A DNA stretch of 63,390 nt, the filler included, from Octopus bimaculoides (Eukaryota): assembly GCF_001194135.2 (NCBI RefSeq). It is 5 parts of 4 records of this genome, joined end to end, with 100 filler letters (N's around TTAATTAATTAA, not from the genome) between each part and the next. Parts side by side here need not be neighbours in the genome. Positions count along the whole stretch, not along the records: positions 29,060 to 55,267 come from NC_068983.1; 4 more parts are not named here. One strand, written 5' to 3'. Shown here one piece after another: positions 47,701 through 50,700 of the stretch (the first letter of the stretch is position 1; each line of letters starts with the position of its first letter). The notes below the pieces were generated by a model that searched no databases, was not told the origin of the DNA, and worked only from the letters and a program-made list of their open reading frames with translations. A program made the position numbers and the translations under genes.

Positions 47701-50700
47701 CTAAATCAGTCTTGGGGAAAACTGCAGCCAGTAGGACTTTCTGAATGGCTTAACAAGAAATTAGTTTGAATTGTTTTAGTAGTGTGGCTCATCGTCAGAT
47801 GAGCCATGTTTCATATGGCCTACTTGTTAAAAAGGTTGCCCATGTCTGTTCCAGACCTCAGTATAGTTGACAACGTCTAGTTGTATACATCAGTATTTCT
47901 CAAACTTTTCTCAACCATCACCACTTTTACATATATGGGTGGTTGCCTGAGTGGTGCAAATGTTGTCATCTGCCAAGAGTAGGGAATCACTATTACAATG
48001 TATCCTCCCACAGGATGATGATTATGTATCTACAATAGATATATCATCATCGTCATCATCATCATTATTATTGTTGTTTTAATGCTCACTTTTCCATGGG
48101 TTGCATAGAAGATATTGTTGTAGATTTTTCCTTCAGATGCTCTTCTTGTTGCTTTGCAATGATAGGAAGAGCCGACATTGAAGGATCAAAAAGCAACGTC
48201 GCTGCAAACGCTTGGCTGCCACAAGCCAGTTATCTCTGTGGTAACTTTTCTGACAACCTTTACCAGTTTCCAAGCAATATTTCCCTATGGCCCCATATGT
48301 TTTCAAAGAAAATTAGAAATGAATGACATTCATTTACAACAATCACATGACATCAAGACAAGGACACACACACACACATGATGGGCTTCTTTTAGTTTTG
48401 TGTTTACAATGTTTACAAAGTCCACTCACAAAGCTTTGGTTGGCTCAGAGCTATAGAAGACATTTGCCCAAAGTGCCATGCAGTGGGATGAAACCTGAAA
48501 CCATGTGGTTGGGACACAAACTTCTTAACCACACAACCACATCTGCACTTGTAAAATATGTTTGTTATTTTACAGATACCAGTAAAATGAAAGAAGAGAA
48601 TCAGAAAAGCCCATAGAAACAAATATTGAAAATATTTCAAATCAGTTTTAGATTTACCGAATCAGGAAATTCACTCTCATCAATGTCATTCTCTATGAGA
48701 ATTCCTTTCGTCTCAGTTTCAATGTCTCCTGATTCTCCAAGGCATTGTAAAAGACTCCTGAAAGAAGAAAATATATATATTGAATATCAACATTTCTAAA
48801 ACACTACGAATAACTGTCATTAATATAAGTGAAATGATTCCGTTGTCACCATTGTGATTGTTGTTGTGTAACCCCTGGATAGCTCCAACTGAGCAAACCT
48901 ATGGCACAAAAGTGACTGATCGAACATCTTTGTGCGAACTGTAGATCGTCTATTGTTCCATGTGTGGCATGCCTCTACCTAGTTGAGCACCATACTGCTC
49001 ACTTTTGGTATGAGACATGATTATCAGCTGTTAATGAAGGAGTTTAATTACTTATCAATCTTGATACTAGTGAAACAGTTAATTAACATTTGTACATGCT
49101 TGTGCCACATAAAAAGCACTAAGTCCACTCTGTTACATTTAAACTTCAATGCAAAATCATTCTACATAGAATGACCTTTGTGATTATCATAGAGACAAAA
49201 TAGATTCAATTACAACAAGAACACTCAGAGAGCGCAAACCACTGCCAAGGCAACACCAACGATTAGCCTGAGATGATTTTTAAAATGAGAATATCTGAAA
49301 TAAACTCGACTGCTCTCACAAACGAAAATACTAAAAATGAACCTGACCACTCTCAAAAATTAAGTAAAGAAACCAGAAAAATAATCCAGAATCCTTGTCC
49401 AGTACCAGATTGATCCCAAAATCTAATCAGTTCGTGCCAGTCATGAGGCCAAACATCCCTGAAAGTTTCATCTGAATCCATCCAGCAGTTCTTGTGATAT
49501 CTTGTCCACGGACAAACAAACTGAAAACAATACCTCAGCCTTCGCTAAGGTAGAGATAATAACTAATGTGCATTTTAACTTCTTTTTAAAACTAATTTCT
49601 CCTGAGTAATATTTCACATGTAAGACTTATATAAATGAAAACACTTACCCTTGCGTCAGGGTTCCAGAAGCATTTTGATTGAGAATTTTGGCAACAAACA
49701 GTACTCTAGAAAAGTCTTCTGGACGTTGTAAATATTCTAAAATAAAAAAAAAGAGTTGATTGAAATTGATAATTAACACTGATTGGTTTAAAGTTTGATT
49801 TAAAAAAAAAATTATTTATGAAATTTAAGTGAAGTTTTCATTAACACAAAATTAATATAATGCTTGGAATTTCAAGAAGTTATAAGTTTGTGACTTCTCA
49901 AGGAAAAATGGTAGAATCAATAAGATTCTGAACAACTACTTTACAATACAAGATGTTCTGGAAATGATTTTCAACCTTGACTGAATAAGGAATTGAAAAA
50001 TCACTCCAACATATCCTAAAAAATTCTATAAATGATTCATCTACAGAATTACTGGAAGTTATCTTTAACAAATGGTGTTACAATTATTGTTTTTTTCTTT
50101 TATATCCTTATTTCTCTTTAAATATATATATTATATTACTGGCTCTAAGTTCAAAATATCGCAATTATCATTCAGTTAAATATATATATATATATATATA
50201 CTAGAGGAGAAGTTTCAACTATCAGAACTAGAGGAGAAGTTTCAGGTGTGGAAGCAAGGTCTAGAACTGAAGGGCCTTAGAGTCAACCTAGCTAAAACCA
50301 AAATCCTAATAAGTAGGAAGGTAGATAAAACACAAACCCCTTCAGGTAGATGGCCCTGCTCAGTATGTAGAAAAGGAGTAGGTAGTAACTCTATAAGATG
50401 TACCCGGTGCAAGCTATGGACACATAAGAGGTGCAGCAACATCAAAGGCAGGTTAACTAGCAAGTTAGTTTTTGTTTGTGGCAGATGTTCAGGNNNNNNN
50501 NNNNNNNNNNNNNNNNNNNNNNNNNNNNNNNNNNNNNNNNNNNNNNNNNNNNNNNNNNNNNNNNNNNNNNNNNNNNNNNNNNNNNNNNNNNNNNNNNNNN
50601 NNNNNNNNNNNNNNNNNNNNNNNNNNNNNNNNNNNNNNNNNNNNNNNNNNNNNNNNNNNNNNNNNNNNNNNNNNNNNNNNNNNNNNNNNNNNNNNNNNNN

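Follow-up and report, generated by a model that had tools for sequence, protein, structure and literature searches.

A 28S rRNA fragment inside a (GAT)n-tailed short element in an Octopus bimaculoides intron: a possible fossil of RNA capture

Chimeric insertions of 28S ribosomal RNA (rRNA) and the long interspersed element (LINE) LINE-1 (L1) have been collected in primates (n = 18); 83% of them are in sense orientation, their segments of 50-482 nt come from all along the 28S, and they have been ascribed to template switching or RNA ligation (bioRxiv 10.1101/2025.02.02.635956). SINE28, which is retroposed large-subunit (LSU) rRNA sequence from the 3′-end of 28S (Longo et al. 2015, PMC4994717), is the only 28S-derived element in a review of the relations between ribosomal DNA (rDNA) and transposons. 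Class 2 templated sequence insertions are short patches from distant transcribed sequences, with neither duplication nor poly(A) and with a small loss at the target, and are known from human cells and populations, mostly with mRNA or mitochondrial templates (Onozawa & Aplan, PMC5110952). Composite short interspersed elements (SINEs), those of molluscs included, form families of modular build, with head, body, LINE-type tail and a short tandem repeat at the end (Ohshima & Okada; PMC5786205; PMC4758252). Here, a locus that touches on all of these is described in a window of 63,390 nt (the whole stretch of DNA that was analysed) from the genome of Octopus bimaculoides (NCBI RefSeq assembly GCF_001194135.2). 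In the 26-kb part of this window that comes from NC_068983.1 (positions 29,060-55,267), which is also the scope of all scans reported below for "the piece", a 106-nt fragment of 28S rRNA lies within a short element ending in a (GAT)n microsatellite, called element X below, in an intron of a DIS3L2-like gene. Coordinates of the features are collected in Table 1.

The 28S rRNA fragment and its position in element X

The fragment, which runs from ...TGTCAGAAAAGTTACC to ...CATTGCAAAGCA, represents the peptidyl-transferase-centre region, helix 89 included. The Rfam model LSU_rRNA_eukarya (RF02543) matches the minus strand with 48.3 bits and an E value of 5.1e-10, which is just below the gathering score of 50, so that a scan with default settings comes back empty. 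The high-posterior part of this alignment covers model positions 2825 to about 2897, and the whole span extends from 2825 to about 2930 of 3401, that is, over an internal part of domain V. No second LSU-like stretch was found when all of the 26-kb piece was scanned permissively. The reference 28S was that of a bivalve, Potamilus streckersoni (contig L001, JAEAOA010000040.1), which was reached through a match to an open reading frame (ORF) of the rRNA-antisense RRT15 type. Positions 48255 to 48150 align without gaps to 758-653 of this contig, with 100 of 106 bases identical (E = 1e-35), and the similarity breaks off abruptly at both ends; given one indel, the fragment could start at 48261. The initial annotation, which placed a domain V fragment of about 106 nt on the minus strand, is thus borne out to the exact length. 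Its count of about eight differences, half of them CpG transitions, is to be replaced by six differences, two of which are CpG transitions.

These six differences from the bivalve 28S are GGG>GAG, CAT>TGC at three adjacent bases in the loop of helix 89, and two changes of CG>CA. Four of the sites, namely the three of CAT>TGC and the first CG>CA, fall within the Rfam alignment, and at each of them the fragment is off the consensus. Because it departs at six positions from a universally conserved sequence, the fragment is, judged by its sequence, a decayed genomic pseudo-copy and not contamination by rRNA reads.

Two features of these changes may be added as observations in their own right. The TGC at 48193-48195 (minus strand, GCGTT-TGC-AGCGAC) is the only clustered change in the fragment, and by the primer coordinates in PMC3950682 it corresponds to positions 2844-2846 of yeast 25S rRNA, directly 3′ of U2843. 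Yeast U2843 is N3-methylated and halts reverse transcriptase at 2844; speculatively, the cluster could be a scar from copying modified rRNA, although the methyltransferase responsible is described as conserved in lower eukaryotes (PMC3950682). The isolated substitutions are all G>A on the sense strand of the element (three of three, two of them in CpG), and three events are too few for separating CpG decay from deamination of cDNA.

A further extension of the 28S similarity by about 70 nt upstream had been hinted at by RRT15-like ORFs with 61% query coverage; it was rejected, as only noise was found beyond 48255 against the bivalve 28S. A 95-aa open frame that crosses the chimera on the plus strand matches only rRNA-antisense RRT15 ORFs, and does so over the 28S part; no database entry identical to this frame was found. 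The bivalve contig itself carries a reverse-transcriptase gene (RVT_1) within its 28S at 1321-4078, in an element whose end (...TTAAAA/TAGCCAAATGCC) coincides with the canonical R2 site; the region matching the octopus fragment lies 668 nt downstream of this site. Site-specific rDNA elements (R2, R4 or RT type) were considered as the source of the octopus junction and rejected, because no 28S sequence follows the (GAT)n.

The position of the fragment becomes clear from a second copy of element X, which has no 28S and carries GAGAT (44481-44485) at the equivalent place. In a test fixed beforehand, 48362-48256 was aligned globally to 44380-44488; the score of 68 compares with 49.4 ± 5.5 for dinucleotide shuffles, and 4 of 2000 shuffles reached it, as did 2 of 450 real windows of the piece. 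When 44380-44572 was aligned to 48362-48066 with cheap gap extension and with no rRNA information supplied, the sole long gap was 48261-48152, which is the 28S piece, flanked by blocks of about 77% and 81% identity. The commoner (GAT)n family described below is likewise uninterrupted across the equivalent point. The similarity of the bodies stops precisely where the 28S begins in one copy and where the tail begins in the other. At the intron locus, body, 28S, tail and (GAT)n follow one another in this order and share one orientation, with 0-3 unassigned bases between 28S and tail. Since body and tail are colinear with an uninterrupted copy and the gap falls exactly over the 28S, the fragment is very probably an internal insert in one copy of an approximately 195-nt (GAT)n-tailed element, where it replaces about 5 nt. 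Aligning the two X copies jointly with the commoner family gave too noisy a result, and the pairwise tests were relied upon instead.

The fragment had at first been taken as the 5′-head of a "28S-headed SINE", a placement not supported in view of the roughly 95 nt upstream of it, which are colinear with 44380-44480. It neither forms a 5′-end beside unrelated target DNA, as the cellular RNA of a chimera would, since the 95 nt upstream are colinear with the same element, nor provides a promoter-bearing head in the manner of SINE28, since it stands between body and tail. A single jump, with the 28S as the true 5′-end and the upstream similarity due to chance, would give the layout that is usual for U6/L1 and 28S/L1 chimeras, and local similarity upstream is indeed weak (BLAST E value of 0.4 in the piece; local score reached by 56 of 2000 shuffles). 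Such an origin is nevertheless very improbable in view of how rarely shuffles and real windows reach the global colinear score; moreover, the similarity ends at the 28S and tail boundaries, the unsupervised alignment recovers the limits of the 28S, and no target-site duplication is found at the presumed 5′-end. The two X copies share approximately the same starting position in the element, beside unrelated simple sequence, an A-rich run at 44380 and (GT)n at 48355. From this shared start X looks like a discrete unit of about 195 nt, and there is a hint that it inserts next to, or primes on, simple sequence.

At the other end of the insert, the 28S/tail junction reads ...AAGCA/AC/AAGAAGAG..., where the bases (A)AC could be the end of the 28S (the A), non-templated bases, or decayed CGAT of the element. 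A "shared GCA" had been proposed at this join; it is plausible as a microhomology of 2-3 nt, and its exact extent depends on the family consensus. The tail is 80% identical over 59 nt to 44549-44607, the aligned tail blocks are about 81% identical to 44486-44572, and the tail is related to a commoner family, GGAAGGGCATCCAGC...CCAACCCATGC.AGCATGGAAAGCGGACGTTAAA, with seven copies elsewhere in the piece. A terminal repeat of the same kind closes eight other elements, which makes nine (GAT)n-tailed elements per 26 kb. The 3′-end of about 90 nt plus (GAT)n that had been recognized here, and called RTE-type, is present in both its parts, at a tail length of about 84 nt. A short tandem repeat at the 3′-end, here (GAT)n, is a feature of RTE-type tails, and microsatellites are common in RTE elements, octopus RTE-2_OV included (PMC9115989). 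No coding LINE with the tail of X was found in the piece, and the tail sequences were not found in the full text of papers. The only LINE-like open frame of the piece, a 132-aa frame at 29062-29457 on the minus strand that resembles a LINE ORF by eye, is cut by the edge of the piece, has no Pfam match and is not linked to the X tail.

Template jumping and alternative origins

The structure is read here, with a probability of about 0.4, as a non-functional fossil of RNA capture by a retroposon reverse transcriptase, which would have jumped to 28S rRNA and back. First, an RTE-like, non-autonomous X of about 195 nt with its (GAT)n tail would have been copied into the intron by target-primed reverse transcription. 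Second, with (GAT)n and some 84 nt of tail copied, the enzyme would have come off the X RNA, possibly where this was broken. Third, it would have jumped to a 28S rRNA fragment and copied 106 nt of domain V. Fourth, it would have returned to the X RNA, landing some 5 nt upstream of the exit point, and completed the element. The copy would later have decayed, with the two CpG transitions in the 28S part among the changes. The component pieces, how they are ordered and oriented, the sharp junctions and the missing target-site duplication are observed; that capture occurred during reverse transcription rather than later, and that it was a single-copy event, we infer.

Only 0-3 nt towards the tail and 0-6 nt towards the body separate the 28S piece from the element, whose orientation it shares. 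This shared orientation supports jumping because a continuous cDNA demands it, whereas a random patch has it half of the time; colinearity on both sides with only about 5 nt (GAGAT) missing fits an excursion from the template and a return to it. As in known chimeras, a sense RNA copy is fused to a LINE/SINE 3′-part and the retroelement part is closed by its usual 3′ repeat, (GAT)n at 48065-48043; no target-site duplication flanks the whole. The chimeric retrocopy put forward in the initial annotation can thus be kept as to the fusion, in the same orientation, of 28S to a microsatellite-tailed LINE/SINE 3′-end, for which a single RNA-mediated capture is reasonable, but not as to the 28S being the 5′-head.

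The same arrangement could also have arisen by repair of a break. X would already have been present in the intron, and end joining would have captured a 106-nt filler of rRNA cDNA or rDNA with loss of about 5 nt; in that case, the neighbouring tail would be mechanistically unrelated to the 28S piece. This origin is possible and ranks only a little below template jumping. It is the simplest account of the continuity of X across the insert, and it agrees with the small loss of GAGAT, the missing duplication, and the 28S 3′-end, which has neither poly(A) nor a microsatellite. These features match class 2 templated sequence insertions, RNA-derived patches at double-strand breaks (PMC5110952), for which no duplication, no poly(A) and a small deletion or microhomology are typical; about 5 nt, GAGAT, are missing here. 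With nine (GAT)n-tailed elements in 26 kb, landing within one of them is unremarkable. Over its 106 nt the 28S piece is free of indels, as against many in the X flanks, which is weakly suggestive of a younger insert, but this argument from age is weak, as the X copies possibly come from different subfamilies. Under break repair, moreover, the sense orientation would be a coincidence of 50%, and rRNA is not established here as a usual donor.

Two further comparisons bear on both origins. Microhomologies are possible at the 5′ join (AGGT(G), between 28S and X) and at the 3′ join (GC(A)), uncertain as they are given the divergence of the copies, and they are compatible with template jumping and break repair alike. 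Over its best-aligned 24 nt, the tail has one change (about 4%) that neither the 44549 copy nor the common family shares, and the 28S piece is 4-6% diverged; on these figures 28S piece and tail could be of the same age, and divergence does not separate jumping from a patch.

No target-site duplication was found around the element. The best direct repeat matches at 7 of 8 bases, a level reached by 631 of 1000 shuffles, which confirms the early remark that there is no clear duplication. RTE-type insertions often lack clear duplications, so the missing one weighs weakly.

Several points speak against template jumping with return. Two jumps, with a return to nearly the same point of the template, are a rarer event than the single jump of chimeras of the U6/L1 type, and no report of a template jump with such a return was found. 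With the target-site duplication missing, target-primed insertion as one unit is not directly supported. The evidence for an internal insert comes from one comparison copy and is of moderate significance (p about 0.002-0.004), and RTE as the clade of the partner LINE is suggested by a single character, the microsatellite tail. Finally, a break patch explains every feature except orientation equally well.

That two independent retro-insertions came to lie side by side by chance, or that rRNA reads were wrongly joined to a repeat in the assembly, is hardly credible. Short 5′-truncated tails are common in the piece, and an assembly gap of 791 N (50494-51284) stands immediately before a (GAT)n-tailed element, which means that the assembly is not gap-free in repeats. 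However, the 28S piece has no 3′ tail, poly(A), microsatellite or target-site duplication of its own; element sequence colinear with the intact copy is found on both sides of it, and its six decay-type differences from conserved rRNA are unlike rRNA reads.

It may also be asked, under either mechanism, whether the insert belongs to a family whose master copy already had the 28S module. Such a family would be a subfamily of X or else a composite SINE, with a tRNA-like head followed by (GT)n, the body of X, the 28S and the tail. This copy of X keeps both ends, as a transposition-competent variant would, foreign modules are known to build SINE bodies (PMC5786205; PMC4758252), and a tRNA-like SINE head lies directly upstream. 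A family nevertheless appears unlikely, since there is one 28S-like stretch only in the 26-kb piece, and since the module is missing from the only other X copy and from all seven copies of the related family. In addition, a curated repeat annotation of Octopus vulgaris from 2026, which lists tRNA-Deu, 5S, tRNA-CORE, U and U-L1 SINEs together with 893 unclassified families, has no mention of rRNA or 28S in its text or supplement. The junction pattern had no match in metagenome, prokaryote-genome and viral collections, which seemingly hold no cephalopod DNA (an abundant octopus tail gave none in the latter two, and the X tail none in the metagenomes), so that this negative carries no weight. A 46-aa query centred on the junction gave four matches among 1.84 billion representatives, all on the 28S part, in collections that contain no cephalopod ORFs. 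A cephalopod SINE or short-retroposon subfamily with an internal 28S body module, propagated by an RTE-type LINE and perhaps driven by the upstream tRNA-like head, is accordingly considered improbable.

Host intron and neighbouring repeats

The whole structure lies in an intron whose flanking exons, together with exons further downstream, encode an RNB domain (Pfam, 1.5e-51, plus OB_Dis3). DIS3-like exonuclease 2 is the name of the nearest database homologues; the best homologues of the exons in the protein collection are 60-71% identical, with no cephalopod among them. The repeat structure begins 97 nt into the 1,951-nt intron and has the same sense as the gene. Placement in a DIS3L2 intron in gene-sense orientation, as originally stated, thus agrees with the AG/GT exon boundaries, the RNB match and the homologue names, and there is no evident consequence for the host gene. 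In the upstream intron, a 63-aa open frame at 49356-49544 on the minus strand is seemingly outside the DIS3L2-like coding sequence. The next intron contains at 45322-46304, on the plus strand, a transposase pseudogene of the Mos1/mariner type (HTH_48, 3.8e-13), whose reading is broken over three frames.

The upstream end of X is adjoined by a SINE-like repeat, which may be an independent neighbour or may itself have been the insertion target. It is 72% identical over 215 nt to 41924-41722, and another copy is found at 40766-40426; no tRNA was called by ARAGORN. If the 3′-half of this SINE flanked the chimera, both an insertion site and a duplication would be given. This arrangement was rejected, as local alignments to two full copies do not exceed the shuffle means, and the 3′-half was found on neither side of the chimera, be it ahead of the 28S piece or behind (GAT)n.

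Table 1. Features of the 28S-bearing locus and of the second copy of element X
Feature	Positions	Strand	Basis or remark
28S rRNA fragment, domain V, decayed	48150..48255	-	Rfam RF02543 and bivalve 28S alignment
Element X body, upstream of 28S insert	48262..48355	-	Colinear with 44380-44480
Junction bases (A)AC	48147..48149	-	Three-way comparison: this locus, 44489 copy, 28S
Element X 3′ tail (RTE-like), AAGAAGAGCATCTG...GAAAAGTGAGCATTAAAAC...	48066..48146	-	About 84 nt; similarity to 44489-44572 tail
Terminal (GAT)n microsatellite	48043..48065	-	Tandem Repeats Finder; 7.7 units, one GAC interruption
Element X second copy (body, tail, (GAT)n), without 28S	44380..44609	+	Reference for uninterrupted state
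SINE-like repeat 5′ part, tRNA-like head, to internal (GT)n 48378-48364	48364..48560	-	Similarity to other copies
RNB/DIS3L2-like gene intron	46707..48657	-	1,951 nt; whole structure inside; splice sites read
RNB/DIS3L2-like gene flanking exons	48757-48658 and 46706-46547	-	AG/GT boundaries

Other repeats of the (GAT)n type show further arrangements. At 34008-34132 and 34383-34455, two (GAT)n-type tails stand in inverted orientation and form hairpins of about 85 nt, which score below threshold on microRNA (miRNA) models (mir-3119, 59.5 bits against a gathering score of 80) and are probably palindromic repeat junctions rather than miRNA genes. Tandem arrays of a 66-67-nt unit are found at 36291-36640 and 42637-42827, with 5.3 and 2.9 copies, respectively. 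The latter is directly upstream, in the sense of the element, of a (GAT)n-tailed element, which suggests a variable-number repeat module inside the commoner (GAT)n family.

Comparison with known systems

Taken together, the locus is real and, as read here, an ordinary fossil of RNA capture, and the founding of a new family is not supported. Its kind is already known from rRNA/LINE chimeric insertions and rRNA pseudo-fragments, and what is unusual is the architecture of an excursion and return, or of a patch; an excursion-and-return layout would preserve two junctions in one copy. If the event was a one-off, reverse transcriptases of microsatellite-tailed, RTE-like elements in a mollusc, or host break repair, would take up rRNA fragments as mammalian L1 does. 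If the same junctions recur across the genome, a SINE would have gained a body module from the most abundant cellular RNA, and an rRNA-bodied SINE subfamily, if true, would be the first outside mammals and the first with an internal rather than 3′-terminal LSU segment.

No SINE with a 28S-derived body module is described in the literature examined. The element resembles composite SINEs in its modular head or body joined to a LINE-type tail with a short tandem repeat at the end; those are families, whereas the 28S-bearing octopus element is known from a single locus. With SINE28 it shares retroposed LSU rRNA sequence, and it differs in that its piece comes from internal domain V, lies in the middle of an element and is known in one copy. 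The likeness to class 2 templated insertions consists in a short patch from a distant transcribed sequence, with neither duplication nor poly(A) and with a small loss at the target, the octopus patch being only putatively one at the DNA level. Finally, as in the 28S/L1 chimeras of primates, an internal 28S fragment, here of 106 nt, is fused directly to a retroelement's 3′-part and reads in the sense direction. Unlike in those chimeras, the partner is not L1 but a short cephalopod element, RTE-like and with a (GAT)n tail, there is no target-site duplication, and the element's own sequence resumes upstream, which makes the rRNA an internal rather than a 5′ part of the copy.

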